Below are positions 9,917-57,093 of a stretch of 64,000 nucleotides of DNA, piece by piece. Both the position numbers and the translations under genes were made by a program. This DNA is from Macrostomum lignano (lineage: Eukaryota). Numbering within the stretch: the stretch's first letter is position 1; the number at the start of each line of letters is the position of its first letter. Below the pieces are notes generated by a model. The model was not told the DNA's origin. It ran no database searches and saw only the letters and a list, made by a program, of their open reading frames with translations. Location of the stretch: assembly GCA_002269645.1 (NCBI GenBank), contig NIVC01001295.1, positions 67,285 through 131,284 on the forward strand. Direction: 5' to 3'.

Positions 9917-11063
9917 TCACAGGCTGCACACATTCCGCAGCTGGTCGAACTGGGCCGCATCGAGGTTGCCAGTCAGCAGAGCCCAGCACTGCAGCCAGCC
10001 GTCGAACGGTTGGATTGCGGCTGACATGCAGCTGCCGATCAGAAGGTTGTTGTGGACGTTGATAAAATTTCCTCCGACTACACTGGTCGATGTATCGATG
10101 GAATTTATCATGGACCCATTGTAGTAGGCGTTGAATACGAAGTCCGTGCCTCCAAAGTTGATTCCAAAGCTCATCAGCCGCTCGACTGAGTCTCCAGCAC
10201 AGCCACTTGTCCAGGTCTTGCTAATGTAAGTTCCAGAAGTAAACTGGACCCTAGCTTTGATGTTGCCGCCGCTTTTTATGTACAAATTAGTCGGATTTGT
10301 TGGGTTGTTGACATCGAGAAACGAGCTGATGCACTTGTCGCTGCAACATTGTACAGGTGGTCGAAGTTTGATAAATTAAATTCTTGCTTGAACTTGAGCG
10401 CAATTATTCAGTCACATACTCGTACATAAATACTCACACAGAGTTGCAGGAAAACTTTCCCTGAAAGAACATGCTGTACTGCTTCCCAGATGCAAAATAT
10501 TTGCTGAATCCGGCAGTCGAGACTTTCACGTAGGAGCCGCTCGAGCCCTGCAGACGAACTCCGTCGACTGGACTCTGCTCGGTGACGTTCACTGGTTCCG
10601 CCTGGTAAACTGATTGGTTGACGAAGTTGTTGAAGCTCTTCTTGAAGTTGTACCACAGCACAAAATTCGAGGACAAGTTCTGGATGACCGAAGCTTCCGA
10701 CAGTGAGCTCGCAGGAGTGGCAGAAGTTGGCGCGCTCGGACCTACGGTGACTTCAGAAGCCAGCAGTTTTCTCCTAGCGACCATCCGGGACCCGCAGCTC
10801 CCGGTCAATGGCGGCATCGCAGACAGCCTGTAGCAGACGGCCCTGTCTGTCAGGTACACAGACAGGCGACACTCGCTGCTGAGAGTGCAGAGCAGCGAGC
10901 ACTCGGGCTCACTTTGGGCGGCCACAGCCTCAGCACTCACAGGCTCGGTGGGACAGTCGCTGGTCAGCAACTCAAACACTGCGGAGCCGTGCTCGAGTGC
11001 CACCGACTGGTACAGCACCAGCGAAAAAGCACAGGCTGTGAGCCAAATGACATGTGACTTCAT
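9917..11063 (-). CDS. Secreted PAN/apple + LamG/ConA-like protein, copy 1 (349 aa, 2 exons)
   Basis: Exon 1 is 11063-10438 (donor GTGAGT), the intron is 97 bp, and exon 2 is 10340-9917 (acceptor ttgcag). The phase-2 join gives ...CNSV-DKCISS... in frame. Features: hydrophobic N-terminus, ECSLLC..ECRLSVY..VCY PAN-like Cys pattern, YYNGSM / LLIGS / FDGWLQ LamG-like motifs. Confidence 0.85.
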
Positions 11064-12249
11064 TTTTGGATCTGGCTTAGAATTTCAAGAACGGTGTGTA
11101 GGAAGTGACGCCTTTAGGAATTTATCCAGACTTTATCTTATTGGAAAGATATATTGTGGGAGACAAGTAAATTTTGCGTCGCATGTGATTGGAGGAGAAA
11201 TTCCGGCATTAATGGTTGCATTGTGGTTGCTATGCAGGAAATCATGAGCCATGGCTACCAATACTCATCCGTATGTTGCTTTTGTTAGAGCTGAGACATC
11301 TTTTATCATCTTAGGGAATGTATAACAGTTCTTAACTTCTTTTTGCATGCGGCGTTGCAGCTCGGGTGACATCTTCAGAACAATGAGCTCGGTTTTTTTC
11401 AAATAGAGTTCAAGTATGGGGATGGGCACAAAAATAGAAAAGAATGGATTCTATGAAGTAAAAACACTTTAACGCAGTGTAAGTCTAGTAAAATATTTTT
11501 CTGATGTCTTAGTCTTCCGCAGGCTTTACTGGAAAAAAAATGTTTTCGTCGGAGGTCCTGCGACTCTGGCGGTGTCAAGGGAAGACAATGCGGCTCTCAG
11601 CTTCTTTTTAATTTCCAGTCCTATTCATAAAAATAGCCATTCTCTTGTACTCAGCATCCGAAAAAAACAAAATGCGTTTCAAAGGAAAGAAATGATTCCG
11701 TGAGTTGAGCATAGGTACAGGTTCAGAATATATTCTTCCGGGACGTACGCTAGTATTTTTTCCACCGAAAGCAAGACTCAGAATGAGAAGTTTGACTAGA
11801 GGAGCCGCTTTGCGGGTTAAGGCATGTCGATGGATGCAGCTGGACAAAAGAATATTTCAGGAGATTTTCATGCGCTCATTCCCAATTCCAAGGCCAGCAA
11901 CCGGCTGGGTGCGGATCTGGGACTGGCGGCGCGGGTTTACAATCTACTTGGTTCTCTCATGAAACTGTCTAACGCTACATAAAGTACTGTTTCTTCAAAA
12001 ACTCAATTCCTGCCGTCTGCTGTACTCCACTGGGTGGGCAAGTGGATTTCGGTGATTGCGCTTCACACTCTCGCGTCTTAAGTGTTATGACTTCTTTTGT
12101 GGCAGAAGGCATCGGACCAAAAGGTAACGTACTCGTAATATTTGCTTTTTTAGCCGGCCATGAATTCGGTCGGAATTCTGTAGAAGCTGAATCTTCTACG
12201 CTATAAGAATTAGTAGCAATAGTAATAATTGATTACGCCTGCCCTAACT

Positions 12250-12490
12250 GGGCCAGATGTGCAACCGACAGCTCAACCAGAAGGCTGCGTACGGCTGTTC
12301 AGTCCAAGGACTGTGGGGGGGGGGGGTCGCAACACACCCTCAATCAGCCTCAATTGCTCCAGCTAATGCTGGCACCCATTTTACAGCTGGGTGAACTGAA
12401 GAAAGGCAGAGTTAACTGTCTTGCTCAAGGACACAAATTGTTCAAGTCGATAGTCCGACGCTCTAACCACAAGGCTACAGCCCTCCCTAC
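12250..12490 (+). mobile_element. SINE-like fragment
   Basis: gctggcacccattttacagctgggtgaactg...tgtcttgctcaaggacacaa...ccgacgctctaaccac resembles, from memory, the conserved body of invertebrate tRNA-derived SINEs. Confidence 0.4.
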
Positions 12491-16313: not shown

Positions 16314-17460
16314 TCACAGGCTGCACGCACTCCGCAGCTGGTCGAACTGGGCCGCATCGAGGTTGCCAGTCAGCAGAGCCCAGCACTGCAGCCAGCCGTC
16401 GAACGGTTGGATTGCGGCTGACATGCAGCTGCCGATCAGAAGATTGTTGTGGACGTTGATAAAATTTCCTCCGACTACACTGGTCGATGTATCGATGGAA
16501 TTTATCATGGACCCATTGTAGTAGGCGTTGAATACGAAGTCCGTGCCTCCAAAGTTGATTCCAAAGCTCATCAGCCGCTCGACTGAGTCTCTAGCACAGC
16601 CACTTGTCCAGGTCTTGCTAATGTAAGTTCCAGAAGCAAACTGGACCCTAGCCTTGATGTTGCCGTCGCTTTTTATGTACAAATTAGTCGGATTTGTTGG
16701 GTTGTTGACATCGAGAAACGAGCTGATGCACTTGTCGCTGAAACATTGTGCAGGTGGTCGAAGTTTGATAAATTAAATTCTTGCTTGGACTTGAGCGCAA
16801 TTATTCAGTCACATACTCATACATAAATACTCACACAGAGTTGCAGGAAAACTTTCCCTGAAAGAACATGCTGTACTGCTTCCCAAATGCAAAATATTTG
16901 CTGAATTCGGCAGTCGAGACTTTCACGTAGGAGCCGCTCGAGCCCTGCAGACGAACTCCGTCGACTGGACTCTGCTCGGTGACGTTCACTGGTTCCGCCT
17001 GGTAAACTGATTGGTTGACGAAGTTTTTGAAGCTCTTCTTGAAGTTGTACCACAGCACGAAATTCGAGGACAAGTTCTGGATGACCGAAGCTTCCGACAG
17101 CGAGCTCGCAGGAGTGGCAGAAGTTGGCGCGCTCGGACCTACGGTGACTTCAGAAGCCAGCAGCCTTCTCCTAGCGACCATCCGGGACCCGCAGCTCCCG
17201 GTCGATGTCGGCATCGCAGACAACCTGTAGCAGACGGCCCTGTCTGTCAGGTACACAGACAGGCGACACTCGCCGCTGAGAGTGCAGAGCAGCGAGCACT
17301 CGGGCTCACTCGGCGCGGCCACAGCCTCAGCATTCACAGGCTCCGTGGGGCAGTCGCTGGTCAGCAACTCAAACACTGCGGAGCCGTGCTCGAGTGCCAC
17401 CGACTGGCACAGCACCAGCGAAAAAGCACAGGCAGTGAGCCAAATGACGGGTGAATTCAT
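16314..17460 (-). CDS. Secreted PAN/apple + LamG/ConA-like protein, copy 2 (349 aa)
   Basis: Exon 1 17460-16835, 97-bp intron, exon 2 16737-16314. Same splice phase as copy 1. Confidence 0.85.
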
Positions 17461-17637
17461 TATTAGATCAGTTTTATAACTGCATGTGCTTGTTGAGATT
17501 CTTGGAGAGAAACGACGTGTAGGAAATAATTCTCTTGGGAATCTGTTCAGGCTTTATCTTATTGGAAAGATACTTGCGAGGAACAAGGAAATTTCGTGTC
17601 GCATGCGATTGGAGGAAAAATTCCGGCATTACTGCAG

Positions 17638-17973
17638 CAGGGGCGTCGCCATGGTGGGGGGACAAAGCCAAGAATTCTAGCTACATGTACGTCCATATAC
17701 TCAAAATGGTTAGTCGCTGGGTATCTATCTAGGTATTTTCAGAATCGGTGTTGTCAGCTCTCTTTTTGGCGCTGCAGGCACTCATTAGCACCACAGGTAC
17801 TAATTAGCGCCACAGGCACTCATTTTGGCGCCGCAGGTGCCTTGTTTTGTCCCCCTGCAGCAAAAGTTTTGATTTCCATAACGGGTCGCAAGGTGGGATG
17901 GGGGGACAAAGCATTTGCATGACACCTTCATATCTTTTACTGGGGGACATGCCCCCCGGTGTAACGGCCCCTG
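17638..17973. mobile_element. hAT-type MITE upstream of copy 2
   Basis: Termini CAGGGGCGTC...ACGGCCCCTG. Absent at the homologous sites upstream of copies 1 and 4. The TSD is degenerate. Confidence 0.8.
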
Positions 17974-18525
17974 AGTGGAAGGCTTTGTGGTTGCTATGCA
18001 GGAAATAAAGAAGCCATTCTGTCGCTACCAATACTCGTCCGTTAGACCATATGTTTTTTTGCTTGAGCTGAGATGTTTTTTATCATAGAAAATGCAAAAG
18101 GATATTGAAAATGCTTTTAACATTTTCAGATAGGCGTTAAACATTAGGAAAAGAAATTTAAGAATGGCTTGGCTTTGCAGTACCTTTTAATAGAAATACG
18201 AGTAAGTTGTTTCTAAGTTGGGTCTAAGTTTTAAAGTGACCTAATACAATCACGACTCAGATGTGGCTCAGTGGACGCTGCTAGTGGCTCTGAATCATTA
18301 ATTTTTAGTTTCGACATCGTCAAGGCAAGAGCTGCTCTACAAACAACTTATAATCAATAATTCAAATGTCACGATTGCAAACTATTCATCAATTTCCATC
18401 GGCAAACCGAAATAATGAAAATCAAACTTGAAGATTTGCTTTCGGGAAAACAATTTCTTTATTTGAACGTCTTTCTTTCTAGCACGCGCTGTCATCGCTT
18501 CGTTTTCTTCCTTTCGTTTTAGAAT

Positions 18526-18585
18526 TAGCGCGCCCTGTGACGCTGACTTTTACCATCCTGACAGCGTATTTTGTTGTTGTTGTTG
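18526..18585 (+). mobile_element. Severely 5'-truncated RTE LINE (3' UTR plus (TTG)n tail)
   Basis: Matches the reverse complement of the RTE 3' end at 49190-49250. TSD tcgttttaga(a/g)t on both sides. Confidence 0.8.
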
Positions 18586-18725
18586 TCGTTTTAGAGTGCT
18601 TATTTTGGGCAGTAGTTTGGTGGTTGTTCTTCCTCCTAAAGCAAAATATTGGCTAATTTTCAGTATATTCTTCAACCAGAAAAAGGCTGCTTCTAAAGCG
18701 TAAAAATTCGTCTGAAACGTTTACC

Positions 18726-18995
18726 CAGGAGCGGATTTAGGGGGGCGGGGGGGACGGCGCCCCCCCCCCAAATAGCTTGACAGAACATATTGCGCCCCCA
18801 AAAACCTGAGTTTGCGCCCCCTAAACTTGATTTTTCGCCCCCAAAAGACATTTTTTGGCGCCCCTAAGCTTGACTTTTCGCCCCATACACGCATTTTTGA
18901 CGCCCCTAGCTTAAAAATTGGCGCCTCTTATACTCGTGTTGGCGCCCCAAACTTGGACCACCCCCCCCCAAAATGAAAATCTAGATCCGCCACTG
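18726..18995. mobile_element. hAT-type MITE
   Basis: TIRs CAGGAGCGGATTTAG / CTAGATCCGCCACTG; perfect 8-bp TSD CGTTTACC at 18718 and 18996. Confidence 0.9.
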
Positions 18996-19749
18996 CGTTT
19001 ACCCTTTGGGCTTTTATTCTAATGAAGCGATCGTTTCTATTTTCTACACCCAAGCCAGCCTCACCCAGGGCCATCTATTCCATAGCGACAGGGCAGCAGG
19101 GAGGGCCCGGACCCCACGCCTCATCGGATGCACCACTGGGACTTACGATGTCGCTGAATAGCCTGGGATTCTAAACCCCGACATGCAGCTGAGTTTGCGC
19201 AGCAAAACCCTGCTCAGCGTCCTGTCGAATAAACAACTCAAATTTCCTGGATGTTTTCGAAACTTCCGGAATCAAACGGTCTGGAATTTCTTGCGACTTT
19301 TGTTTCAATACTTCCCGTTTGTGCTATGGCTTCCTGCAATGTTGTGAAGCCTAGTCCTTGTCAGCTTAAGAATAATTCGAGCTATTCAGACAGTGAGAAA
19401 ACTGCTTCTTCATTCTTTATTTCCACTATGCAGCTCCCGCAAGGGTTTGGGATTGAGTCAAAAGATGACTGTCTGAAAGCTGGTCAAAATCTCTGGAAGA
19501 AGTTTTGCAAATTTTGCGAGCAATCTCTGACAGTAGCTATTACGTCGTAATATGAGTCTTGAACAGTCTAAAAGCATCCATCCACCAATATATGCGCACT
19601 TCTCATAATGCACATCTGGGTCAGATCCTAACGGAAGTGCACCAATGTACTCGTAATACTTGTATTGCTGCGCGCACCGACAAGAATTACAATTGGAACG
19701 ATGCTAGAACGCTGGAAGAATCTAGCACGCTGACGAGTGCGTCAATAAT

Positions 19750-22700
19750 GTAGTAGAGGCCGGGGCTGTTGCCCCCAGGACCCCAGGTCCTGCACGCAAT
19801 GGCGTGGTGAACTATCTGTGCAGTATGAGACTGGTATGGCCTCTATCCCAGCCAGCGATGCTCACACCTGCCTCTCCTGGCGGGCTGATAGCTCACGAGA
19901 CTCTGTCTCCTGATTTTCACCTTGCAAGGCGCACTTCGAAGGGTACTCGTCCCGTGGGTGTTAAGGCAGGCTCTTGGGCCTCGCCGAGCTGATTCATTAG
20001 CGCCGGGTCCTGGTGTGACCATATAAACGCACCCTCTAATGTCCCAGTGTAACTCCGTGCTCATGGACGCTTGGCCAGGGAGTAGTCTGGTCGCTAACGG
20101 TTCCCCTTGCGCTTTTGGGTCCCCCGCAGGATGGTAAGGTTTGCTTTTTGGGGCCTGTCGCTTGGTTTGGGGTTGCGGCCTTGCGGCTCTTTGCCTGTGT
20201 TCTGCAGGAAGTCCCACCTTTTTACTTTCAGCCAATGGCTTCTAACCGAAGTAACCAACCGGCTGTGGATGACACAGTGCCTCCGGCCTCGGCTGGGGCC
20301 GTGGACTCCGCGGCCACACGATCTGCTACCATCGGGGACGCCTCGGCGAGACCCGTGGAACCAACTCTGAGCGGTGCCTCCGATAAGATACCTGCTACTC
20401 CAGCTGGGCACGCCTCTGCACATTCATTCAAATGCAATGAGGGACTCGTGCCCTCTCATTTGGCCTAGTGATGCTGACTCGGGTCGGCGGCTCCTTGAGC
20501 TGCTGCCCGAGCAGAGCTGGGACCTCAACTTAGCCTTCTGCAGAGAGGACGAACGTCCCCGGACCAAGAGGCATCGAATCTGGGTTCCGGCCAGGAGCGT
20601 CGTTACCTCTGCTGACGAGCTCCGGAAAGGACTGCTAGCAGTCAACCGGGAGCTTCCCGCCGCGGGCCTAGTGGTGCATGATACCCTTAAGCGCAGCGAC
20701 GGCACTGGCTTCACAGCCATCCTGGGGCTGTCGGACGCCTGGATGGCGCTATCCGCACGGCAGCTTCATCAACGTCGGCCTTTGGAAGCTGCGCATCCGC
20801 TCCTACGAGGCCGACCCTCCCCTTGGCAGTGAGCAGAGCTGGCGGGATGCTGAGGCGGCCGGGGCCGAGGCGGGAGCTTCTGCTCAGGCTGCCAAAGCAA
20901 ACCGCCTCGCCCGGCAGCACGGCCGCGCGGGTAAAGTCGAACGCGCTGCTGAGGGCGGAGGCGACCGACGCCCGGCGCGCAGCACCAAGCGGCGCGGCCT
21001 GTACCAGCGCGCAGCTGAGGCAGTCCGTACCGCCAAAATCACCCAGCTGAGGCGAGAGGTCACCGGGATGCCTAGGCGCACCAGCTCGTCCAGGGAGAGT
21101 GGGGACGTCTCAGCTGGGCCCAACCCCTCGGGGCAGGGCCGACTGGAGACGGACCCGCCTGCCCAGGCGGCTGGCTGCAACTGGCTCCAGGGCATTGGGC
21201 CAGTCGGAAGCGGAGGACCCCGTGGCCGGTGGGCGAAGGGCGGCGAACGCTGCCTATTTCCTTCCGACCAGTCGGGGGCTTTTTGCTGAAGAGGAGCCCA
21301 TGGACACCGGCGACCCCGACCTAAGCTGGTGAGCGCCGAGGAGGAGGAGGAACTCCTGGCGACTGCAACACCCGATCTGCACTGATAGCAGCGGCTACCT
21401 GGTGTCTGCAGATCAACACCCAGCACTGCGTGGCGGCGTCAGTCAACCTGATGCGCACGACAGAGCAACAGCTTCCGGGCCTGGTCTTCGTGCAGGAGCC
21501 CTGGATGACTAAAGGTAAGCCAAATAATGTGCCATCTGGCAACCACTGTTTTTGCATGGCGGACTCTCAGCCTCGCCCAAGATCTCTGGTCTTTGCTGCA
21601 AAAGCTTTTAAGACATGGATGAGACCTGATCTCTCTACTGGGGACGTCTGTGTTGTTTCAAATCAATAACCTCATTCCAAATAAACCTGTGCTGGTAGCA
21701 TCTACCTATTTCCCAGGCGATGCCCCAACAGTCTGCGACGCACTAGTCAACCTCATTGACTACGCCGCGTCCCGCCGGTTCGAGCTGCTCATTGCAGGGG
21801 TTGTGAACGCACACCACCTGCATTGGGGCAGCAAGAACACAAATAACAGAGGCGAGGAGCTGCTGGCCTACGTCAGCAGCACAAACCTCAATTTCTGTAA
21901 CGTGGGCAATGCACCAACGTTCAATAATGGGCGGTGGGCCGAAGTCATTGACACCACCATCGCCTCACCCGGACTGTTTTCCGCAGTCACGGGCTGGCGA
22001 GTGTGGGACGAGGACTCGCTCTCGGACCACCGCTTCATCCGCTTTTACATTGGGCCGACCAAGCAAAAGCTTAAGGTCTCTTGGAGTCGGAACGTCAGGA
22101 ACACCGATTGGGCCGCCTTTGGCTCGAAGCTGAGCCGCGGCCTTCGGGATCTTGATCCCCCAGTGACCTCTCTGACTGCCAGGTGGTGGATGATCTCGCC
22201 TCCTCCTTGGGCGGGGCGATCACCACTGCCTTTGAAGCAGCCTGCCCTCTAAAGACCTATAAAGGCAAGAAATCTGCTCCCTGGTGGAACCCAGAGCTCG
22301 GGGCCCTTCGGCGCCGAGCCAGGACCCTCCAAAGGCGAGCGCTCAAAACCAAAGACCCATCTGATATAGAGGCCTATACCCGTGCGATCCACGAGTTTAA
22401 GGGCCAAGTCAGAATGTCCAAGACGGCCAAGTGGCGCCAATATTGCAAAGGGCTTGAGGGCTTTCGCCCCGTAGCCCGCGTGGTTAAGGCACTCACTAAC
22501 GACCGTTTTTCTAAACTCTCTGTTGTGAAGAGACCTGATGGCTCGGTCACAGAGAGCTCGGAAGAGACTCTAGTAGAGCTAATGCTCAACAGTTTCTTAC
22601 CTAAATCTCCGACTCAGCAGGGCCCGCCCGACCACACAGTGGGAGGGCAAGGCCTAGCAAAGTCTATGATCACCAAAGACCGCATTATTAGAGCGGCAAG

Positions 22701-23541
22701 GTCCTTTCACCCGTTCAAGGCGCCTGGGCCCGATGGCATCTACCCAGCGTTCTTGCACGAGGCGGTGAAAAACCACCGTTTCCTGGACCTGCTCTGTCGT
22801 CCCCTTCGAGCTTGTGTGGAGCTGGGCTATGTACCAGTTGCGTGGAGAGAGGCTCGGGTGGTCTTTATCCCCAAGCCTGGAAAGAGCGACTACCAATCGG
22901 TGAAGGCCTTCAGGCCTATCAGCCTCACTTCTTTCTGCCTCAAGCTCTTCGAGAGACTGGTACTTTGGCGCCTACTTTCGGTCGAGCAGAAGCGCTTCCC
23001 ACTCTCGCAGAATCAGCACGCCTTCCGCGCGGGCAGGTCTACCGAGAGTGCCCTCCATGTCATCGTTGACTTCCTGGAGAGGGCCGTTCTTGGCAGCGGC
23101 TTTGCCCTCTCGCTTTTCCTGGACATTGAGGGGGCCTTCGACAACGTCATCTTCGAGGCCTTCTGCAGAGCCCTGGAATCCAGGGCCACGAACTCTCACC
23201 TTGTCCGGTGGATCATGTTCATGATCCGGAACCGCAGTGTTGTGGCCCACCTGAACGGCAGCTCTCTTTCGGCGCCTGTCCAGAAAGGGGCCCCCAGGGC
23301 GGAGTTCTCTGGAACATGGTCATGGATGAGTTGCTTTGCAGTGATCTCCACGACCCCATTCTCAAGGTGGGCTGTGCCGATGATGTGACCGCGATATGCG
23401 CGGGCCCCTCGGTTGATACCATCAGAGACCTTCTGCAGGGCTTTCTGGGACGAGCGGAGCGTTGGGCAAACCAATGTGGCATTAGACTCTCAGAGTCGAA
23501 AATCACAGCGGTCATGTTTACCAACAAACTGCTCTGGACCA
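19750..23541 (+). mobile_element. Non-LTR retrotransposon, LOA/R1-like, frameshifted and 3'-truncated
   Basis: Broken ORF1 at ~20236-21289. APE endonuclease motifs: CLQINTQHC, VFVQEPW, NAHHLHWGS, SDHRFI. RT motifs: KAPGPDGI, FRPISL, QHAFRAGRST, LDIEGAFDNV, with catalytic YADD present as CADD. The 5' boundary is approximate. Confidence 0.85.
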
Positions 23542-23545
23542 TTAA

Positions 23546-28608: not shown

Positions 28609-28667
28609 GCTGTTCTTAAACTTGCAATTCAGAAGATGCTAAATGTACGAGTACTAACTCAACAGTC

Positions 28668-30683: not shown

Positions 30684-31196
30684 ACAGTCGGAACACGAAA
30701 GAAGCCAGACGCGAACACAAATATGAGAGAGCGATCAAAAATGCCCCAAAGACTTGCGACAGTTAAAACCAAGGAGTTCTATAATTAGCAATCATAGATT
30801 ATTAGTTTAACGCGAAGAGTATAAAAAGCGATCGCAAACAACTAAAGGAAAAGAAAAACTTGACTAAAAGACAAGCTTGTATAAATAAGGATAAATGAGA
30901 CCACAAAAGATTAAACAAATTAAATCCAACACAGACAGACAAAGCCAACTGAATCAACGCGAAAAGGCCTTGAAATCAGATCGGGCAGATAGGCGCAAAA
31001 GGGAGGGGCACGACGGAGGGAGAGAAAGTGCACAAGGCTTGGCTTCGGAAAACAAAGCTTAGTAAAGAAATAAAAAATTTTCTAAGGTATATTTGAATGT
31101 TTAAACTCTTGCTAAATAGTTTATCGATAAATGGTTCGTTTTCAGTAAATTAGTTGTCGATGCCATTTCTGCGCTCTTTCGTCTTCTATTTTTGCA

Positions 31197-32346
31197 TCAC
31201 AGGCTGCACGCACTCCGCAGCTGGTCGAACTGGGCCGCATCGAGGTTGCCAGTCAGCAGAGCCCAGCACTGCAGCCAGCCGTCGAACGGTTGGATTGCGG
31301 CTGACATGCAGCTGCCGATCAGAAGGTTGTTGTGAATGTTGGAAAAATTGCCTCCTCCGGAAAAAACCATCGACATATGAATAGACTTCATCATGGATCC
31401 ATTGTAGTAGGCGTTGGATGAGAAGGTCATACCTACGAAGTTGATTCCAAAGCTCGTCAGCCGCTCGACTGAGTCTCCAGCACAGCCACTTGCCCAGGTC
31501 ATTAAGGAACTACTGAGAGTACCAGAAGCAAACTGGACCTTAGCAGTGATGTTGCCGTCGCTTTTTATGTACAAATTAGTTGGGGTTGTTGGATTGTTGA
31601 CATCGAGAAACGAGCTGATGCACTTGTCGCTGAAACATTGTGCACGGGTGATCGAATGTTCATAAATAAATCCTTTTTTGATAGAAACCTAATTATTCAG
31701 TCATATACATAAATACTCACACAGAGTTGCAGGAAAACTTTCCCTGAAAGAACATGCTGTACTGCTTCCCAAATGCAAAATATTTGCTGAATTCGGCAGT
31801 CGAGACTTTCACGTAGGAGCCGCTCGAGCCCTGCAGACGAACTCCATCGACTGGACTCTGCTCGGTGACGTTCACTGGTTCCGCCTGGTAAACTGATTGG
31901 TTGACGAAGTTTTTGAAGCTCTTCTTGAAGTTGTACCACAGCACGAAATTCGAGGACAAGTTCTGGATGACCGAAGCTTCCGACAGCGAGCTCGCAGGAG
32001 TGGCAGAAGTTGGCGCGCTCGGACCTACGGTGACTTCAGAAGCCAGCAGCCTTCTCCTAGCGACCATCCGGGACCCGCAGCTCCCGGTCGATGTCGGCAT
32101 CGCAGACAACCTGTAGCAGACGGCCCTGTCTGTCAGGTACACAGACAGGCGACACTCGCCGCTGAGAGTGCAGAGCAGCGAGCACTCGGGCTCACTCGGC
32201 GCGGCCACAGCCTCAGCATTCACAGGCTCCGTGGGGCAGTCGCTGGTCAGCAACTCAAACACTGCGGAGCCGTGCTCGAGTGCCACCGACTGGTACAGCA
32301 CCAGCGAAAAAGCACAGGCAGTGAGCCAAATGACGGGTGAATTCAT
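31197..32346 (-). CDS. Secreted PAN/apple + LamG/ConA-like protein, copy 3 (352 aa, chimeric)
   Basis: Exon 1 32346-31721 is nearly identical to copy 2. The 91-bp intron and exon 2 (31629-31197) match copy 4. Confidence 0.85.
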
Positions 32347-32523
32347 TATTAGATCAGTTTTATAACTGCATGTGCTTGTTGAGATTCTTGGAGAGAAACG
32401 ACGTGTAGGAAATAATTCTCTTGGGAATCTGTTCAGGCTTTATCTTATTGGAAAGATACTTGCGAGGAACAAGGAAATTTCGTGTCGCATGCGATTGGAG
32501 GAAAAATTCCGGCATTACTGCAG

Positions 32524-32859
32524 CAGGGGCGTCGCCATGGTGGGGGGACAAAGCCAAGAATTCTAGCTACATGTACGTCCATATACTCAAAATGGTTAGT
32601 CGCTGGGTATCTATCTAGGTATTTTCAGAATCGGTGTTGTCAGCTCTCTTTTTGGCGCTGCAGGCACTCATTAGCACCACAGGTACTAATTAGCGCCACA
32701 GGCACTCATTTTGGCGCCGCAGGTGCCTTGTTTTGTCGCCCTGCAGCAAAAGTTTTGATTTCCATAACGGGTCGCAAGGTGGGATGGGGGGACAAAGCAT
32801 TTGCATGACACCTTCATATCTTTTACTGGGGGACATGCCCCCCGGTGTAACGGCCCCTG
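32524..32859. mobile_element. hAT-type MITE upstream of copy 3
   Basis: Duplicate of 17638-17973. Confidence 0.8.
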
Positions 32860-33450
32860 AGTGGAAGGCTCTGTGGTTGCTATGCAGGAAATAAAGAAGC
32901 CATTCTGTCGCTACCAATACTCGTCCGTTAGACCATATGTTTTTTTGCTTGAGCTGAGATGTTTTTTATCATAGAAAATGCAAAAGGATATTGAAAATGC
33001 TTTTAACATTTTCAGATAGGCGTTAAACATTAGGAAAAGAAATTTAAGAATGGCTTGGCTTTGCAGTACCTTTTAATAGAAATACGAGTAAGTTGTTTCT
33101 AAGTTGGGTCTAAGTTTTAAAGTGACCTAATACAATCACGACTCAGATGTGGCTCAGTGGACGCTGCTAGTGGCTCTGAATCATTAATTTTTAGTTTCGA
33201 CATCGTCAAGGCAAGAGCTGCTCTACAAACAACTTATATTCAATAATTCAAATGTCACGATTGCATGGTCCGACCGGGCGTAGCTTGGTTGGGTGTTAAA
33301 CCAGTGGGGCGTCGCTCTTGTGCGTTGGTACGGGGGGTGGTGGGCCTGGCCTTGGTCACGTGCCCGCGGCCTGGGTGGCGTTTATTTAATACGGTGCGGG
33401 CTGTCGCTGACCCGCCAAGCGCGTATTGATTTTTTTTCTCAATTTTTGCA

Positions 33451-34569
33451 ATGGCTGACCGCGACAAACTTATGCACCTGAGCAAGGTGGCTCTGCTAGC
33501 CTTGTGTGCCAACGCTAACATAAGCAGTCGGGGCAACAAGGCCGACCTTGTCAGCGCCCTGCTCGCAGCCCCAGACCAGTCGTGGACAGATTCGCTGTTG
33601 CAGAACATGGAGCAATCTGAGCAAGAAGCCGAAGCAGACGACAACATCAGTACGGAGGCGGCTCGGGAGTCGGCGGCGGGCCTGGACGAGGACATCGCGA
33701 AGGCGGAGAAGGAGATCAGACTGTTGCAGCTACGCAAGGAAGCCGCTCAACTCAAGAGGGAGATCGGAGATCTGCAGCGCGAGTGTCCATCCACGCGTCC
33801 TATGAATCGCGGTGAGTGTGCCAAGCCTGCTGGCCCCAGTTACTTTCCTGATGGGTGTGATGATGCTGAATTAGACCAAGCAGATAATGGCAATGAGCTG
33901 CTTGACAGATTGTTGTCACAGAACAGGGCCAATGAACGGATGGAGTGTTCTGGTAGACGTAAGGCTCTCCTGGTTCGTGATTTCCTCGACGGCTTTGAGC
34001 AGGAAGAGGTGCTGGCTAATGGTTCTGGTGGCCGAATCACTTACAAGAGCAGAAAACCTAATCCAGATAGCATCACGGCAGCGCAGTATTTGGTAGGCAA
34101 TTGCAGGCTGATGATGCAGATGATCAAGGATGGTGCCCTGGTGACTAGTAGAAATGGAACTGCCGACACGACTGATTTGATGAATTACTTACGCTACTCA
34201 ATACAGATTGGCGAGCTGTTTGACGCGGGCTTCGGCCTTGCGCAGGTGAATCGTTTTGACGAGGACTACCGCACTAGGCAAGCTGAAACTGGCATGCGAT
34301 GGGGCAAGGAGTCTTTCCAACTCGTTGCTAAGCACTTAATCAGAACTGGAACTCCAGCAAACCATGGAGTCAGCAAGTCATTGCCCCAGCCACGGCAGCA
34401 GCGTTTTCAAAAACCAATAGACCCCAAGAGCCTCAGAACGCCAGACGGGGAAGAGATCTGCTTGCACTTTAATCGCCGGGGGTGCTTCCGGTCGAGCTGC
34501 AAATTCCGGCACGTATGCCGCATCTGTTTCGAGGCCCACCCTGAGGCCAACCATTCGACAAAAAACTGA
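33451..34569 (+). CDS. DIRS/Ngaro gag-like ORF (372 aa, intact)
   Basis: N-terminal SAP/HeH-like helices (LALCANANISSRGNKADLVSALL) and a C-terminal CCCH/CCHH zinc-finger region (ICLHFNRRGCFRSSCKFRHVCRICFEAH). Confidence 0.75.
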   Translation: MADRDKLMHLSKVALLALCANANISSRGNKADLVSALLAAPDQSWTDSLLQNMEQSEQEAEADDNISTEAARESAAGLDEDIAKAEKEIRLLQLRKEAAQLKREIGDLQRECPSTRPMNRGECAKPAGPSYFPDGCDDAELDQADNGNELLDRLLSQNRANERMECSGRRKALLVRDFLDGFEQEEVLANGSGGRITYKSRKPNPDSITAAQYLVGNCRLMMQMIKDGALVTSRNGTADTTDLMNYLRYSIQIGELFDAGFGLAQVNRFDEDYRTRQAETGMRWGKESFQLVAKHLIRTGTPANHGVSKSLPQPRQQRFQKPIDPKSLRTPDGEEICLHFNRRGCFRSSCKFRHVCRICFEAHPEANHSTKN

Positions 34570-34577
34570 AGTCTGCG

Positions 34578-35292
34578 ATGCTCTGTTTTAATCCTAAAAT
34601 TTTGCCTAATGCTCAGCCTGCTTTAAATTTTAACAATCCTGTCGTTGGCAGTGCAGGGGGTCGCCTGCGTTTTTGTTCGTGGGATTCTGAGCTTGAGAAT
34701 GACCCTGATCGGAATTTTATCCTAGACGGCATCGCAAATGGTTTTCGCATTACTGATGGCAAAGGGCTTTGTGAGACTTTTAATGCCAATTACATGTCTA
34801 CTTCTGCTTTTCATCGCGCTGTTGAGCTGCAAATTAAAGAAGAGATTGAGAATGGCAGGTATTTGATTGTGCCTAAGAAGCCTACGATGGTCAGCCCTCT
34901 GGGAGCAATTCCCAAGGATAACGGGAAGGTTCGACTTATTCATGACTGCAGCACGCCTCCGGGCTACTCGGTAAATGACAACTATACGAAGAAGCTGAGC
35001 CCCAGGTTTGAGTCCGTCAAGAAGGTTGCTGCCTCTATCGGCAAGGGCTGGTTCATGGCAAAGCTTGATTTGTCGCAAGCTTACAGAAGCGTGGCGATCC
35101 ATCCGGATGATTACCAGGCGACCGGCATTGGTTGGCGCTTTAAAGGCAACCGTGATCTGACATGGCTTGTCGACACCCGGCTACCCTTTGGTAGCTGCGC
35201 CTCGGTCGAGATTTTCTACCGGCTTAGTCAAGCGGTCAAGAGGATGATGGTGCGACGCGGCGTGGCCAATATTTCGGTTTACATGTTGAAAC
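34578..35292 (+). pseudogene. DIRS/Ngaro reverse transcriptase, truncated just before YxDD
   Basis: SPLGAIPKDNGKVRLIHDCS, AKLDLSQAYRSVAIHP and RLPFG. Homology ends at ISVY. Confidence 0.85.
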
Positions 35293-35453
35293 AATGTCAC
35301 GATTGCAAACTATTCATCAATTTCCATCGGCAAACCGAAATAATGAAAATCAAACTTGAAGATTTGCTTTCGGGAAAACAATTTCTTTATTTGAACGTCT
35401 TTCTTTCTAGCACGCGCTGTCATCGCTTCGTTTTCTTCCTTTCGTTTTAGAAT

Positions 35454-35513
35454 TAGCGCGCCCTGTGACGCTGACTTTTACCATCCTGACAGCGTATTTT
35501 GTTGTTGTTGTTG
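35454..35513 (+). mobile_element. RTE LINE tail (duplicate of 18526-18585)
   Basis: Perfect 12-bp TSD tcgttttagaat. Confidence 0.8.
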
Positions 35514-35653
35514 TCGTTTTAGAATGCTTATTTTGGGCAGTAGTTTGGTGGTTGTTCTTCCTCCTAAAGCAAAATATTGGCTAATTTTCAGTATATTCTT
35601 CAACCAGAAAAAGGCTGCTTCTAAAGCGTAAAAATTCGTCTGAAACGTTTACC

Positions 35654-35930
35654 CAGGAGCGGATTTAGGGGGGGCGGGGGGGACGGCCCCCCCCCCCCCC
35701 CAAAATAGCTTGACAGAACATATTGCGCCCCCCAAAAACCTGAGTTTGCGCCCCCTAAACTTGATTTTTCGCCCCCAAAAGACATTTTTTGTCGCCCCTA
35801 AGCTTGACTTTTCGCCCCATACACGCATTTTTGACGCCCCTAGCTTAAAAATTGGCGCCTCTTATACTCGTGTTGGCGCCCCAAACTTGGACCACCCCCC
35901 CCCCAAAATGAAAATCTAGATCCGCCACTG
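35654..35930. mobile_element. hAT-type MITE (duplicate of 18726-18995)
   Basis: Same TIRs and 8-bp TSD CGTTTACC. Confidence 0.9.
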
Positions 35931-36110
35931 CGTTTACCCTTTGGGCTTTTATTCTAATGAAGCGATCGTTTCTATTTTCTACACCCAAGCCAGCCTCACC
36001 CAGGGCCACCTATTCCATAGCGACGGGGCAGCAGGGAGGGCCCGGACCCCACGCCTCATCGGATGCACCACTGGGACTGACGATGTCGCTGAATAGCCTG
36101 GGATTCCAAT

Positions 36111-36831
36111 CCCAAAAAAAGGTAACACTTTGTGCGCTCACTGTGAGTGAGCAGTTAGGCCTATACCACAGTAATTTAACAGGTCCTTCCAGAGGCGAGT
36201 TATTGAGCACAGAAGTGTAGATTGGCTGGCCAATCGCTGTTAGCGGGGCCGGGGGGCTTGTCGTCGCCCGTGTTTGGGGGTGCTTGGTCCGGGGGTGGGT
36301 GCGCCGCCCCCGGGGCGGGGGTGGGTGTCTGTGGGGCCTTTTTAGCCCCGTGGGTTGTGCCTGCCTCAGGCTATCTCTCCTCGCCAGCTTGCATGCGTTT
36401 TTTTCTGCTTTTAGCCCCCTTTCTCGCAATTCCTGCAACTTCCTTTTTTCCTTTCGCTTCGTTTACCTTTTACTCTTCCAAATAGTTTTTTCGAATGCTT
36501 TCCAAATATACTCGTGTCTCGTAAATTGCCCATACAGGGCGGTAGGATGTTTTGCTCGTGCTCTCCAATCCTTGCCTTTGCTCTCTCCCTCCGGCCGTTC
36601 CGCTAAGTGTACGCTAGCTTTTCTGCCAAGCTTTGCCATACACAGCTGCCATAGACAATCTAAAAGCTAGCGTACACTTCTGTGCTCAATAACTCGCCTC
36701 TGGAGCAATTTTTCGCAACCAAATGTTTGTGGGAAAAACTTACAAATGTTTACTATGGACCTGTTAAATTACTGTGCTATATGCCTAACTGCTCACTCAC
36801 AGTGAGCGCACAAAGTGTTACCTTTTTTGGG
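36111..36831. mobile_element. Non-autonomous DNA transposon with long TIRs (CCC...GGG termini, possibly CMC/EnSpm-like)
   Basis: cccaaaaaaaggtaacactttgtgcgctcactgtgagtgagcagttaggc...aacaggtcc is mirrored at 36757-36831. A second inverted block tccagaggcgagttattgagcacagaagtgta lies further inside. No TSD. Confidence 0.8.
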
Positions 36832-37223
36832 ACACCCGTTACAGAACTGTCAATCCCGCTTGCAGAGTCAAACGGGCACCACTCAGCTATTCTTTACTAC
36901 ATCATTATAATGTATCATGCGGATTAAACTTGTGATAATCACTTGCAAAAATGTAATATCAATAGTCAATACACTTTGCATTGCGAAAATACTCTCATGC
37001 ACTACATCTACAAGCGTATTAATTATCTACAATCTTCTGAAATCTTGCATGCACGGACTGGTTGAAAAATAGGGAAGCAGCTCCGCTGGGTAGGGGAGCC
37101 GAGCCGGCTCCAAAAAAAATTTAGAGTAGGAGTTTGGGCTGTGGGGATGGAGCCCCGCTAAGACAAACTTAAAGTAAGAGTTTGGGGTGTGGGGATGGAG
37201 CCCCCGCTAAGACAAACTTAAAG

Positions 37224-37581
37224 GGGGGCCGTAGCCCAGCGGTAGCGCAGCTGCTCTGGTGTGCCAGCGACCCAGGCTCGATTCCAAGTGCAGCCACATT
37301 AATTTGGGGCTGAATTGGAATTTCGGCTTGGCTCGCCTGTGCAATTAACGGCCTTGAGAGCCAACCCCCCAAGGCGCAGTGAAGTGTACATGCCTAACAA
37401 TTGATAAAGTTAGGGCCGCTGTACACTCCTGTGTGAGTGTGTGCCTGCGTAACGTATCCGCGCGCTTGTATGCCTGCTCAGGGGAGTCGGGCGGAATGGG
37501 CAGTAATGCCTCTCGCCGGTTGTGTGCCTATGTCGCCTAAAGTGCGCCAGGGTGCACACAACCCCCCTGCCTCTAAAAAAA
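37224..37581 (+). mobile_element. tRNA-derived SINE (duplicate of 27050-27406)
   Basis: Same head, A tail and 14-bp TSD. Confidence 0.85.
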
Positions 37582-38040
37582 AGACAAACTTAAAGTAAGA
37601 GTTTGGGGGCGTGGGGTGGGGTGGAGCCCCCGCTAAGACAAACTTAAAGTAAGAGTTTGGGGGCGTAGGTTGGGGTGGAGCCCCCTCTAAGACAAACTTA
37701 AAGTACAATAAGAGTTTGGGGGCGTGGGGTGGAGTCCCCGCCAAGGCAAACTTTAAGTAAGAGTTTGGGGGCGTGGTGGTGGAGTACCCGCCAAGGCAAA
37801 CTTTAAGTAAGAGTTTGGGGGCGTTGGGGTGGAGTACCCGCCAAAGCAAACTTTAAGTAAGAGTTTGGGGGCGTGGGGGTAAAGTACCCGCCAAGGCAAA
37901 CTTTAAGTAAGAGTTTGGGGGCGTGGGGTGGAGTCCCCGCCAGGGCAAACTTTAAGTAAGAGCTTGGGAGCGTGGGGGTGGAGTACCCGCCAAGGCAAAC
38001 TTTAAATAAGAGTTGCGAGGAGTGTTGGGGCGGAGCGCAC
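37582..38040. repeat. G-rich minisatellite (duplicate, one more unit)
   Basis: Same unit as 27407-27810. Confidence 0.9.
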
Positions 38041-38558
38041 CACCAAGCCTAATTAAATTAATAGTTTTGGAGACTATATAATTCCGGTCATTACATTTGC
38101 TATTTGCTCCCACTTTAGCGGGAGCAATCTGGAATCATCTACTACTCGTAGTTTCCAAGGAAGTGAACGGACGCACGGGGTCTTGAACTCTTGCTCTCCG
38201 TTGGATGGCTTTTAGCTGTCATTTCCCTCTACTGTCGTCTCTGTTTTTCATTGTACTTTTAAAAACAAGTTCCAATTTTTTTAAAATAAAAAAGTGAAAC
38301 AATACATTAAAATGATCGTGTCTTTCTGAGCTACTTCAAGTAATGCATGCATGTTATTATTAGCTAGCTCGTATTAAAAATTGACAATTTTTTAGAACTT
38401 TTACTGACACATCATATTGTTGCTAGTATTAGTAGTATTATCTCAGTAAAACTTTTTAGTAATACGCACGTACAGCACTAGGAAAGCAATATGGCTGCTC
38501 CTTCCGGTGTGCAACAAAGCGTGATACATTGATAAAACAGGCTAACAGGTGCTATTCA

Positions 38559-38837
38559 CAGGGGTGTCGACATTGATTTTATGGTGGGGGACAAAGAAAT
38601 AAATTTTACTTGTACATGCACATGACTGAATTCCTCTATTTACATGATTTTGAGAATCGGTATTGTCAGCACTCATTTTAGCGTCACAATTGCTAAACTT
38701 TAGCGCTCTGAAACAAATCTATTGCTTTACTCAACGGGTAATAAGGTGGGGTGAGGGACAAAACATTATCATGTCCCCCATAGCTCATACTGGAGGGGGA
38801 CATCTCCCCCCTGTCCTACCCGGTGGCGACGCCCCTG
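38559..38837. mobile_element. hAT-type MITE (duplicate of 28330-28608)
   Basis: Same termini and flanks. Confidence 0.8.
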
Positions 38838-38896
38838 GCTGTTCTTAAACTTGCAATTCAGAAGATGCTAAATGTACGAGTACTAACTCCACAGTC

Positions 38897-40019
38897 CACG
38901 GAAAGGCGCTTGACTCGGTGTTGAGAGCCGCTCTCCCCTTTGTCCTTCGAGCCTACCGGGTGCCCCAGCAGCTAATCGACGCTGTCATGGCGCTGTATTG
39001 CGATACTCGAGCTGCTGTGGTGACGGCGGACGGCCTGTCTGACCTGTTCGACACTTCATCAGGAGTTCTGCAGGGAGACACTTTGGCGCCGTTCCTCTTC
39101 GTGCTGCTCCTGGACTGGGTGCTTCGGACCGCACTCCCCTCGGCTAATGACGGCTTCCTGCTGCGCAGACGCATCGGTCGCCGCCACGGCGAAAAGCGCC
39201 TAAGCGTGCTTGGCTACGCCGACGATCTCGCCCTACTGTCCTCGTCTGTTGAAGGCGCCCAGCGCCAGATCGACAGGTTGGTCGAGGTAGCATCGAGCGT
39301 CGGTCTGGTTGTCAACACGCTGAAGACCGAGGTGCTGACTGTGCCGGCCGACATCCCAGCAGACCTGACATGCCGCGGCGCAGACGGGCAGACGACCAGG
39401 CTCGCACGCTGCCAGCGGTTCACCTACCTCGGCGGTCTGGTGCTTCAAGTGGAGGAAGACCTCCGGCGGCGCAGAGGACTTGCCTGGGCGGCCTTTCGTT
39501 CGATCCGAGCCGTCCTCCAGTCTGAAGCGCTGCCCGACCGCCAGAGGGCTCGGCTGTGGCAGGCGGTGGTCGAAACAGTCCTGCTCTACAACGCCGAGAC
39601 GTGGACGCTGACGGCTACGCTGGAGCGGCAGCTGGACTCGGCGCACTCAGGGCTGCTCCGTGCGGCCTTTCGAGCTGACGAGAGCGTCGGGACCGAGGCC
39701 CTGTACGATCGGGCCAAGCTGCAGCGCCCGTCCATCATCCTGCTCCGATGGCGACTCCAACTGGCGGGCCACGTGATCCGGGCCGAGGGCTACTGCCCCC
39801 AACCTGTTCAGGACGTCCTGCTGCTCACCTTGCAGGGCCCGTTCAGGCGGGGTCAGGCCCGAACCCGTCGATACGTGGACTGCCTGCTGTGCGACGCTGG
39901 GGCGCCCGACACTGCTAACGGAGCGGACTTCGTTCGCTCCCAGGCTCTGCGGCGCGCCATCTGACGCGCCCTGCTCTAACTGACTTTGCACGCGGGGCCG
40001 CGTATTTTGTTGTTGTTGT
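38897..40019 (+). mobile_element. 5'-truncated RTE-clade LINE, uninterrupted copy
   Basis: ORF 38918..39964 with YADD and thumb motifs; (TTG)n tail; TSD acagtc. Confidence 0.9.
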
Positions 40020-40533
40020 ACAGTCGGAACACGAAAGAAGCCAGACGCGAACACAAATATGAGAGAGCGATCAAAAATGCCCCAAAGACTTGCGACAGTT
40101 AAAACCAAGGAGTTCTATAATTAGCAATCATAGATTATTAGTTTAACGCGAAGAGTATAAAAAGCGATCGCAAACAACTAAAGGAAAAGAAAAACTTGAC
40201 TAAAAGACAAGCTTGTATAAATAAGGATAAATGAGACCACAAAAGATTAAAAAAATTAAATCCAACACAGACAGACAAAGCCAACTGAATCAACGCGAAA
40301 AGGCCTTGAAATCAGATCAGGCAGATAGGCGCAAAAGGGAGGGGCACGACGGAGGGAGAGAAAGTGTACAAGGCTTGGCTCCGGAAAACAAAGCTTGGTA
40401 AAGAAATTAGAAATTTTCTAAGGTATATTTGAATGTTTAAACTCTTGCTAAATAGTTTATCGATAAATGGTTCGTTTTCAGTAAATTAGTTGTCGATGCC
40501 ATTTCTGCGCTCTTTCGTCTTCTAATTTTTGCA

Positions 40534-41683
40534 TCACAGGCTGCACGCACTCCGCAGCTGGTCGAACTGGGCCGCATCGAGGTTGCCAGTCAGCAGAGCC
40601 CAGCACTGCAGCCAGCCGTCGAACGGTTGGATTGCGGCTGACATGCAGCTGCCGATCAGAAGGTTGTTGTGAATGTTGGAAAAATTGCCTCCTCCGGAAA
40701 AAACCATCGACATATGAATAGACTTCATCATGGATCCATTGTAGTAGGCGTTGGATGAGAAGGTCATACCTACGAAGTTGATTCCAAAGCTCGTCAGCCG
40801 CTCGACTGAGTCTCCAGCACAGCCACTTGCCCAGGTCATTAAGGAACTACTGAGAGTACCAGAAGCAAACTGGACCTTAGCAGTGATGTTGCCGTCGCTT
40901 TTTATGTACAAATTAGTTGGGGTTGTTGGATTGTTGACATCGAGAAACGAGCTGATGCACTTGTCGCTGAAACATTGTGCACGGCTGATCGAATGTTCGT
41001 AAATAAATCCTTTTTTGATAGAAACCTAATTATTCAGTCATATACATAAATACTCACACAGAGTTGCAGGAAAACTTTCCCTGAAAGAACATGCTGTACT
41101 GCTTCCCAAATGCAAAGTATTTGCTGAATCCGGCAGTCGAGACTTTCACGTAGGAGCCGCTCGAGCCCTGCAGACGAACTCCATCGACTGGACTCTGCTC
41201 GGTGACGTTCACTGGTTCCGCCTGGTAAACTGATTGGTTGACGAAGTTTTTGAAGCTCTTCTTGAAGTTGTACCACAGCACGAAATTCGAGGACAAGTTC
41301 TGGATGACCGAAGCTTCCGACAGCGAGCTCGCAGGAGTGGCAGAAGTTGGCGCGCTCGGACCTACGGAGACTTCAGAAGCCAGCAGTTTTCTTCTAGTGA
41401 CCATCCGGGACCCGCAGCTCCCGGTCGATGGCGGCATCGCAGACAACCTGTAGCAGACGGCTCTGTCTGTCAGGTACACAGACAGGCGACACTTGCTGCT
41501 GATAGTGCAGAGCAGCGAGCACTCGGGCTCACTTTGGGCGGCCACAGCCTCAGCATTCACAGGCTCGGTGGGGCAGTCGCTGGTCAGCAACTCAAACACT
41601 GCGGAGACGTGCTCGAGTGCGACCGACTGGCACAGCACCAGCGAAAAGGCACAGGCAGTGAGCCAAATGACGGATGACTTCAT
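40534..41683 (-). CDS. Secreted PAN/apple + LamG/ConA-like protein, copy 4 (352 aa)
   Basis: Exon 1 41683-41058, 91-bp intron, exon 2 40966-40534. Confidence 0.85.

Positions 41684-42979: not shown

Positions 42980-48588
<5,609 letters not shown>

Positions 48589-57058: not shown

Positions 57059-57093
<35 letters not shown>

Follow-up and report, generated by a model that had tools for sequence, protein, structure and literature searches.

A stretch of 64,000 nucleotides from the flatworm Macrostomum lignano (contig NIVC01001295.1 of assembly GCA_002269645.1, hereafter the window) holds a tandem array of four related genes, c1 to c4, which are predicted to encode secreted proteins with a PAN/apple-like domain and a concanavalin A-like (ConA-like) jelly roll. 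The four copies are mosaics of one another. The explanation we favour, with moderate confidence, is that ordinary homologous exchange within the array (unequal crossover and gene conversion) produced this mosaic and that c3 is a real hybrid gene. Tandem gene families are textbook cases of such behaviour, and no new kind of system is needed. The original prediction for this locus saw in it a "full 2x2 mosaic" and a candidate for a special, undescribed system that recombines modules, but one hybrid copy together with conversion around an old island is enough to account for the pattern.

The four-gene array

All four genes lie on the minus strand, have two exons and no internal stop, and encode proteins of 349 or 352 amino acids (aa). 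They occupy exactly positions 9917-41683, from the stop codon of c1 to the start codon of c4. Aligning the window to itself gives four homologous units of about 1.45 kb with one gene in each (~9812-11252, 16293-17637, 31092-32523 and 40428-41874), and tblastn found no further copies or fragments of the gene in the window. The homology of c2 to the other copies stops about 20 bp past its stop codon. Exon 1 is 626 bp from the ATG in every copy, exon 2 is 424 or 433 bp, and the intron between them is 97 bp in c1 and c2 and 91 bp in c3 and c4, with GTGAGT as the donor and either TTGCAG or TTTCAG as the acceptor. These gene models confirm that the array consists of four genes with intact frames and splice sites, as had been proposed.

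Upstream of the ATG is a block which is kept in all four copies and which is a candidate core promoter. The 5' flank around this block diverges by about 20% between the c1/c4 and the c2/c3 types, and the c2/c3 type carries a 24-bp insertion closer to the ATG than the block. Coordinates of the genes and of the other features are collected in Table 1.

The mosaic pattern

In the four-way nucleotide alignment, the 5' flank and exon 1 contain about 55 informative sites which group c1 with c4 against c2 with c3, plus one site which groups c1 with c3 and one which groups c1 with c2. From the start of the intron to about codon 307, ~300 bp into exon 2, there are about 70 informative sites, all of which group c1 with c2 against c3 with c4. 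We call the two forms of this intron and exon-2 segment B1 (c1 and c2) and B2 (c3 and c4). The last ~130 bp of exon 2 are almost invariant across the copies.

These are the two groupings that the original prediction had read from the sequence. The exon-1 residue contrasts which it listed are all in the protein alignment (K/N at residue 2, AAQS/AAPS, MPP/MPT, RRK/RRR and STAG/STAE), as is the LSS/LSG contrast, for which c4 reads ISS, and the ~70 sites agree with its grouping of copies 1 and 2 against 3 and 4 by intron length (97 vs 91 bp) and exon 2. Its proposal that the copies exchanged sequence is borne out by maximum chi-square breakpoint tests on parent-child triplets, which gave permutation p<=2e-4 in all four configurations.

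The grouping of c1 with c4 in exon 1 holds as a site pattern, but by synonymous divergence (dS) the two are not especially close. The exon-1 dS is 0.085 between c1 and c4, 0.063-0.077 between either of them and c2 or c3, and 0.007 between c2 and c3. Residues common to c1 and c4 (S63, K99 and G185) are also found in paralogues outside the window and are therefore ancestral states, so that the exon-1 likeness of c1 and c4 seems to be mostly shared ancestry. Taken together, the dS values and the ancestral residues indicate three exon-1 forms (that of c1, that of c4, and one common to c2 and c3, which we call A2) and not two.

Could the shared states have arisen by chance or by parallel substitution, without any exchange? 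That several of the exon-1 similarities between c1 and c4 are ancestral and not derived is what such an account has in its favour. It is effectively refuted by the site patterns, which change from ~55 sites of one kind to ~70 of another with only one or two exceptions, by the permutation results (p<=2e-4), and by neutral divergence which varies several-fold between neighbouring segments.

Copy c3 as a hybrid of c2 and c4

Copy c3 reads as a hybrid. Its 5' flank and exon 1 match c2, and its intron, exon 2 and 3' flank match c4. Read against the 144 sites which separate c2 and c4, c3 agrees with c2 over the first 80 and with c4 over the 64 that follow, with none that matches neither, and it has no private substitution. 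The order is broken by one c4-like site (31846) and by the positions of a private c4 change. The exchange point lies at the end of a tract of ~330 bp in which c2 and c4 are nearly identical, just before the intron, where they diverge by about 20%. The breakpoint thus sits at the border of exon 1 and intron because homology collapses there, not because exons act as modules.

The sequence around c3 is duplicated as well. In the self-alignment, 17637-19178 corresponds to 32523-33265 plus 35293-36113, 26704-29114 to 36840-39343, and 29999-31092 to 39338-40428, which makes the c2-c3 and c3-c4 intervals colinear copies, referred to here as duplicons I and II. Their aligned parts differ by 0-6 mismatches per 200-bp window, or ~0.2-1.7% of bases. 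The pieces which do not align are private insertions of transposable elements with target-site duplications. There is therefore a single switch point between neighbouring paralogues and a colinear duplication between the two parents, with the hybrid at the junction. As far as sequence can tell, this anatomy would be the signature of one of two events: a single unequal crossover, or a join by the assembler of two subgenome variants.

If c3 is real, the latest event would be an unequal crossover (non-allelic homologous recombination) in which c2 recombined with c4 inside the nearly identical ~330-bp tract at the 3' end of exon 1. Such a crossover would have duplicated the entire c2-to-c4 interval and left c3 at the junction, with the promoter and exon 1 of c2 joined to the intron and exon 2 of c4. 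Transposon insertions would then have accrued separately in each duplicon. In the order of events which we infer, gene conversion had earlier homogenised two parts across the copies, the exon-1 coding sequence and the final 130 bp of exon 2. An island of ~385-460 bp (the intron plus ~300 bp at the start of exon 2) would have escaped conversion and persisted as the old forms B1 and B2, and one island form would have passed between c1 and c2.

The other source of the same anatomy is the assembly. Here, two variants of the c2-to-c4 interval, from different subgenomes or haplotypes, would have been set in series by the assembler or a gap-filler, through a join in the homologous part of c4 (in variant X) and c2 (in variant Y). 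The true locus would then be c1-c2-interval-c4, with three real genes and one chimeric junction, and the older conversion mosaic of c1, c2 and c4 would stay real. We consider this case, the haplotype mis-assembly that the original prediction had named as a refutation, possible for c3 but on the unlikely side. The M. lignano line DV1 has three subgenomes, with 1.4-2.4% single-nucleotide polymorphisms between them and 32-36% counting long insertions and deletions (indels), and the reference Mlig_3_7 is reported to contain collapsed, expanded and chimeric haplovariants (PMC10733133). The two duplicons look like subgenome variants of this kind, with their low mismatch rate and four large private insertions, and the lack of private sites in c3 is what a join would leave. 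The window contains no run of N, so no scaffold gap is visible at the junction, and a false overlap would need to be anchored in a nearly identical tract of only ~330 bp. Over its full 1.4 kb, the homology between c2 and c4 has 89% identity. Real crossover hybrids also arise often in tandem families, and the same anatomy is expected of them.

Several observations weigh against a real c3. Site 31846, which is discordant, can be accounted for only by homoplasy or by a parent that is not the c4 of the window. The indel load of the duplicons, at about half of their length, is high for a base divergence of ~0.7%, and it resembles that reported between M. lignano subgenomes (PMC10733133). The exact proteins of c3 and c4 are both missing from the independent ML2 protein set, which does have the exon 1 of c3 with B1 (A0A1I8FV41) and a c4-like protein with E185 and B2 (A0A1I8G272). 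An assembly join at c3 would predict just these genes: both predicted parents, c2 with Y18 and B1 and a c4-like copy with E185 and B2, are in ML2, the A2 and B2 combination of c3 is absent from it, and a c4-like parent with E185 removes the need for homoplasy at site 31846. Since the exact c4 protein is also absent from ML2, the absence of c3 there is weak evidence. Finally, we found no expression evidence for any copy.

An old island in homogenised genes

A comparison of c2 with c4 shows how unevenly the genes have diverged. In exon 1 their dS is 0.07, against 0.30 in codons 209-310 (the patch) and 0 in the tail of exon 2, which corresponds to synonymous changes at 10 of 149 sites, 16 of 64 and 0 of 30. 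Fisher tests on these changes gave p=4e-4 and, for tail against patch, p=0.002, so neutral divergence differs significantly between neighbouring segments of one gene pair. The B1 and B2 introns, with 17-22 mismatches over 89 aligned bases and 10 gap columns, are as divergent as the patch. The 5' flank is likewise ~20% divergent, yet has the opposite partition to that of the intron and patch. Old segments (the 5' flank, and the intron with the patch) which are interleaved with homogenised ones (the exon-1 coding sequence and the tail) appear to be the product of concerted evolution by gene conversion.

Between B1 and B2, the patch has a dS of 0.27-0.30, a nonsynonymous divergence (dN) of 0.16 and a ratio of the two (omega) of 0.54-0.61. 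Relative to B1, B2 has three more residues, two more N-glycosylation sequons (at 235 and 303) and clustered changes in strands and loops. In exon 1, dS is 0.063-0.085 and omega is 0.30-0.44, and exon 1 is under purifying selection.

Why the island has two forms was considered in several ways. Positive selection on the patch is rejected on the present data, as omega is not above 1. The idea that a distant subfamily was the source of the B2 patch is rejected too, as B1 and B2 are similarly far from the outgroup family member P0005 (41-44% identity).

It has also been proposed here that the exchange itself is a selected diversity mechanism, in which balancing or diversifying selection maintains B1 and B2 as binding cassettes of different function, re-assorted over different promoter and exon-1 backgrounds into a combinatorial repertoire for recognition in immunity, mating or adhesion. 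In its favour, B1 and B2 separated long ago (dS ~0.28) and homogenised sequence bounds them sharply, each of the two is found with several exon-1 backgrounds among the family members, the extra sequons and residues of B2 fall in a lectin-like fold, and omega is higher in the patch than in exon 1. Even so, omega stays below 1, an island too diverged for conversion is the standard neutral expectation, there are just two forms rather than many, and the exchange point cuts through one domain instead of separating domains. We therefore regard this mechanism as very unlikely. A more modest version has B1 and B2 as old, selectively maintained cassettes of a binding surface, which conversion has shuffled among paralogues and among the three subgenomes to give a small recognition repertoire (e.g. 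for mating, sperm or microbes). This too is improbable, and we offer it as speculation.

Domains and fold of the proteins

The proteins seem to consist of a signal peptide, a PAN/apple-like domain, a linker rich in serine, threonine and proline, and a ConA-like jelly roll, in that order. The signal peptide is likely by inspection of the sequence, where hydrophobic residues 5-20 are followed by SVA|LE. It lends support to the original description of the proteins as secreted, and secretion is probable on this reading.

The PAN/apple domain was the second part of that description. PAN_1 (PF00024) scores 16.7 bits in c1 and 16.3 bits in c3, under the gathering cut-off of 21.4. The best family member, P0005, reaches 21.3 bits, and 9 of 13 family members match at E<1. 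Cysteines 37, 55, 59, 65, 77 and 90, as expected of a PAN domain, are present in all four copies and aligned across divergent paralogues. A profile of the family, searched against the sequences in the PDB, matched the PAN modules of 6ryw (E 1.7e-4), MIC4 (3.2e-4) and the N domain of HGF (0.02-0.3). The matched chains with PAN domains include 6ryw, 4a5v and 2ll3, and together with HGF these span E 1.7e-4 to 0.05. The AlphaFold2 model of the region has a helix and three strands, with a predicted local distance difference test score (pLDDT) of 72-77. The PAN call is thus weak but supported by the six cysteines; the profile matches to PAN structures are suggestive, and the score falls under the Pfam cut-off.

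For residues 125-349, AlphaFold2 with an alignment of 13 sequences gave a pLDDT above 90. This alignment was required: with 4 sequences the pLDDT was 36, and that model was discarded. When the structure was searched with Foldseek, the top 50 matches were all lectin-like subdomains of the clostridial neurotoxin Hc region, from tetanus and botulinum toxins, with a best E of 5.9e-8 and a probability of 1.0. The model and these matches both point to a two-sheet jelly roll. The neurotoxin subdomain is a fold of the ConA-like/LamG superfamily, and the family profile finds the same neurotoxin chains as a weak sequence match (E 0.014). A search of PDB sequences with a shallow profile returned noise only. 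Pfam Laminin_G_3 (PF13385) has no match in c1 or c3 at E<=1, and it is matched by one distant paralogue only, P0014 (4.2e-6; "weak" in the precomputed annotation). The LamG/ConA part of the original prediction is therefore strong as a statement about the fold (Foldseek E of 6e-8), but the proteins of the window are without a Pfam LamG match. On the modelled fold, the family may bind in the manner of lectins, and the role in recognition, adhesion or reproduction put forward in the original prediction is a hypothesis. Reading the neurotoxin matches as evidence of a toxin was rejected; the fold is a generic lectin-like jelly roll, with 11-19% identity.

The intron, at codon 209, falls in the middle of the jelly roll (~125-349), so the exons are not domains. 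The two "modules" of the original prediction are then not structural domains, and exon shuffling of domains is rejected as a source of the mosaic.

Relatives outside the window

The family profile was searched against 1.84 billion representative proteins. The search returned 13 matches, of which 12 are members of the family from M. lignano; P0016 looks like a spurious match driven by repeats and was rejected as a member, and P0007 and P0010 look like fused gene predictions. The family appears to be restricted to the M. lignano lineage, as far as current databases show. In UniProt its relatives are labelled "Apple domain-containing protein", and our literature search on Macrostomum apple/PAN, Laminin_G_3 or taxonomically restricted secreted proteins found no paper on the family.

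The c1 protein is identical to A0A1I8FWC3 and the c2 protein to A0A1I8G3A5, both M. lignano entries in UniRef. Exon 1 of c4 is 99.5% identical to A0A1I8IEZ8, while exon 2 differs by 8%. The exact c3 protein was absent from the databases searched. In exact-protein look-ups of public assemblies, there was no match for the full-length c1 protein (P0002), the c4-like P0001, or the exon-1 open reading frames (ORFs) of c3, c1 and c4.

Other combinations of exon 1 and island occur in ML2. Another c4-like exon 1 pairs with a variant of B2, and a sub-group with a linker insertion of 6 aa carries B1 or B2. A four-gamete test on the ML2 proteins, with c3 left out, gave at least 7 exchange events; this count was made at the protein level, where amino-acid homoplasy and chimeric gene models could inflate it. 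The combinations and the four-gamete result together show that mosaicism is general to the family and not confined to this array.

The distant paralogue P0014 was retrieved at two loci of GCA_002269645.1 (L001 on NIVC01003538.1 and L002 on NIVC01000193.1), each with a single copy. The gene is intronless, at 10001-11017 of both retrieved loci, and lies beside an amino-acid permease gene. The two loci are probably subgenome copies. As P0014 is intronless and single-copy, the intron and the tandem arrangement are features of a subfamily, not of the whole family.

Transposable elements, repeats and neighbouring sequence

Four insertions distinguish the duplicons (Table 1), two of them being different inserts at the same position, 19178-26704 in copy I and 36113-36840 in copy II. 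The element with terminal inverted repeats (TIRs) at 29115-29998 splits a reverse-transcriptase ORF of a long interspersed nuclear element (LINE) into 28689-29162 and 29975-30625, and this ORF is intact in the other duplicon at 38918-39964, where the position that corresponds to the insertion is 39338-39343. The empty site of the 33266-35292 element is kept at 18365-18379.

Table 1. Features of the array and its surroundings, in window coordinates (TIR, terminal inverted repeat; LINE, long interspersed nuclear element)
Feature	Position	Strand	Description
c1	9917..11063	-	Exon 1 11063-10438, intron 10437-10341 (97 bp), exon 2 10340-9917; 349 aa; own exon-1 form with B1 intron/exon-2 type
c2	16314..17460	-	Exon 1 17460-16835, intron 16834-16738 (97 bp), exon 2 16737-16314; 349 aa; A2 exon-1 form with B1 type
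c3	31197..32346	-	Exon 1 32346-31721, intron 31720-31630 (91 bp), exon 2 31629-31197; 352 aa
c4	40534..41683	-	Exon 1 41683-41058, intron 41057-40967 (91 bp), exon 2 40966-40534; 352 aa; own exon-1 form with B2 type
Conserved upstream block	11131..11214	-	At ~70-150 bp 5' of the c1 ATG; conserved in every copy
Two-form island in c3 (B2)	31335..31720	-	Intron and exon-2 codons ~210-307
Island equivalent in c4 (B2)	40672-41057	-	
Island equivalent in c1 (B1)	10055-10437	-	
Island equivalent in c2 (B1)	16452-16834	-	
Homogenised exon-2 tail in c1	9917..10054	-	Equivalents in c2-c4; zero synonymous differences among the four copies
Exchange point in c3	31704..31780	-	Best supported; last 60 bp of exon 1 and first 17 bp of intron
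Outer bounds of exchange point	31704-32031		Set by the c4-like site 31846
Exchange-point equivalent in c2	~16812-16886		
Exchange-point equivalent in c4	~41041-41117		
Duplicon copy I	16894..31780		Exon-1 side of c2, upstream flank, interval, LINE-fragment flank up to the c3 exchange point
Duplicon copy II	31780..41117		Colinear with copy I
Insert private to duplicon I	19178-26704		LINE (Exo_endo_phos_2 and RVT_1, 21650-23388) and piggyBac-type transposase (DDE_Tnp_1_7, 23973-25596)
TIR element private to duplicon I	29115-29998		884 bp, TATAAG...CTTATA ends, 6-bp target duplication ACTGTG
Reverse-transcriptase element private to duplicon II	33266-35292		gag-like ORF, weak RVT_1 ORF, 15-bp target duplication AATGTCACGATTGCA
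TIR element private to duplicon II	36113-36840		~720 bp, long terminal inverted repeats

Dispersed repeats of about 80% identity also occur: 19110-19441 matches 42250-42581, and 17736-17945 and 32622-32831 both match 52216-52430. The first pair lies upstream of c2 and of c4 and may be left over from an older and larger unit of duplication, or be a transposon. A 31-bp minisatellite lies between c1 and c2 at 12868-13498, and others are at 48195-48447 (33-bp units), 51004-51450 (31-bp) and 62291-62995 (~24/54-bp units). Two arrays resemble microsatellites, one from 43409 to ~45000 with a period of 8/12 bp and a strong strand asymmetry (GC skew -0.37), the other at 53982-55084 with units of 10/12/22 bp.

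Elsewhere in the window, a 45-bp tandem repeat of ~13-18 copies at 3798-4607 encodes a 15-aa repeat like SQQQSEHTVESHAEQ, and sits inside a 480-aa ORF on the minus strand (3122-4564). Just past the array, on the minus strand at 45370-47085, are ORF pieces with RNB and Dis3 cold-shock (OB_Dis3) domains, which are probably exons of a DIS3-like exoribonuclease gene. The plus strand at 56573-58725 has a GC content of up to 67% and long ORFs with polyglutamine, polyproline and polyalanine tracts.

Significance and comparison with known systems

What the array means depends on c3. If it is real, it is a clean and recent hybrid from unequal crossover, which gave an exon 2 the promoter and exon 1 of another copy, in a neopolyploid flatworm with a genome known for its instability. 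Should it not be real, it is a concrete case of an expanded haplovariant in the reference which can be checked and which would inflate gene counts. Either way, the locus brings to light an uncharacterised family, predicted to be secreted, which combines PAN with a ConA-like jelly roll and is found in Macrostomum only among the 1.84 billion representative proteins. Its function is testable, because M. lignano is amenable to RNA interference and in situ hybridisation. No long-standing question is opened by these results; what remains is a Macrostomum-only, lectin-like family with an old island in two forms.

Each domain has known counterparts. The PAN-like domain resembles those of other PAN/apple proteins (the N domain of HGF and plasminogen, MIC4, and modules of fungal alcohol oxidase) in its profile alignment and six cysteines, and differs from them in scoring under the Pfam cut-off and in the modest pLDDT of its model. 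The predicted jelly roll is like that of Laminin_G_3 and of the N-terminal subdomain of clostridial neurotoxin Hc. Unlike a relative of the neurotoxin, the proteins of the window share its likeness of fold only, at the low identity given above, with no implication of toxicity.

Hybrid genes formed by unequal crossover in tandem arrays are well known from the haemoglobin anti-Lepore delta/beta gene and from red/green opsin hybrids. As in those cases, c3 is flanked by the two paralogues that are its parents, the segment between the parents is present twice, the junction falls in a stretch of high identity, and each half of the gene is nearly identical to a different parent. The differences are that the parents in the window are only ~89% identical overall, with an identity tract of ~330 bp, that the duplicons carry different transposon insertions, and that the hybrid is a putative one, read from assembled sequence.

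Concerted evolution in which one region evades gene conversion is likewise familiar, from RHD/RHCE and from the MHC and KIR clusters. There, as in this family, homogenised segments flank an old island (here with a dS of ~0.28), and discrete forms of it move between paralogues; unlike those systems, the family of the window has two main island forms only.

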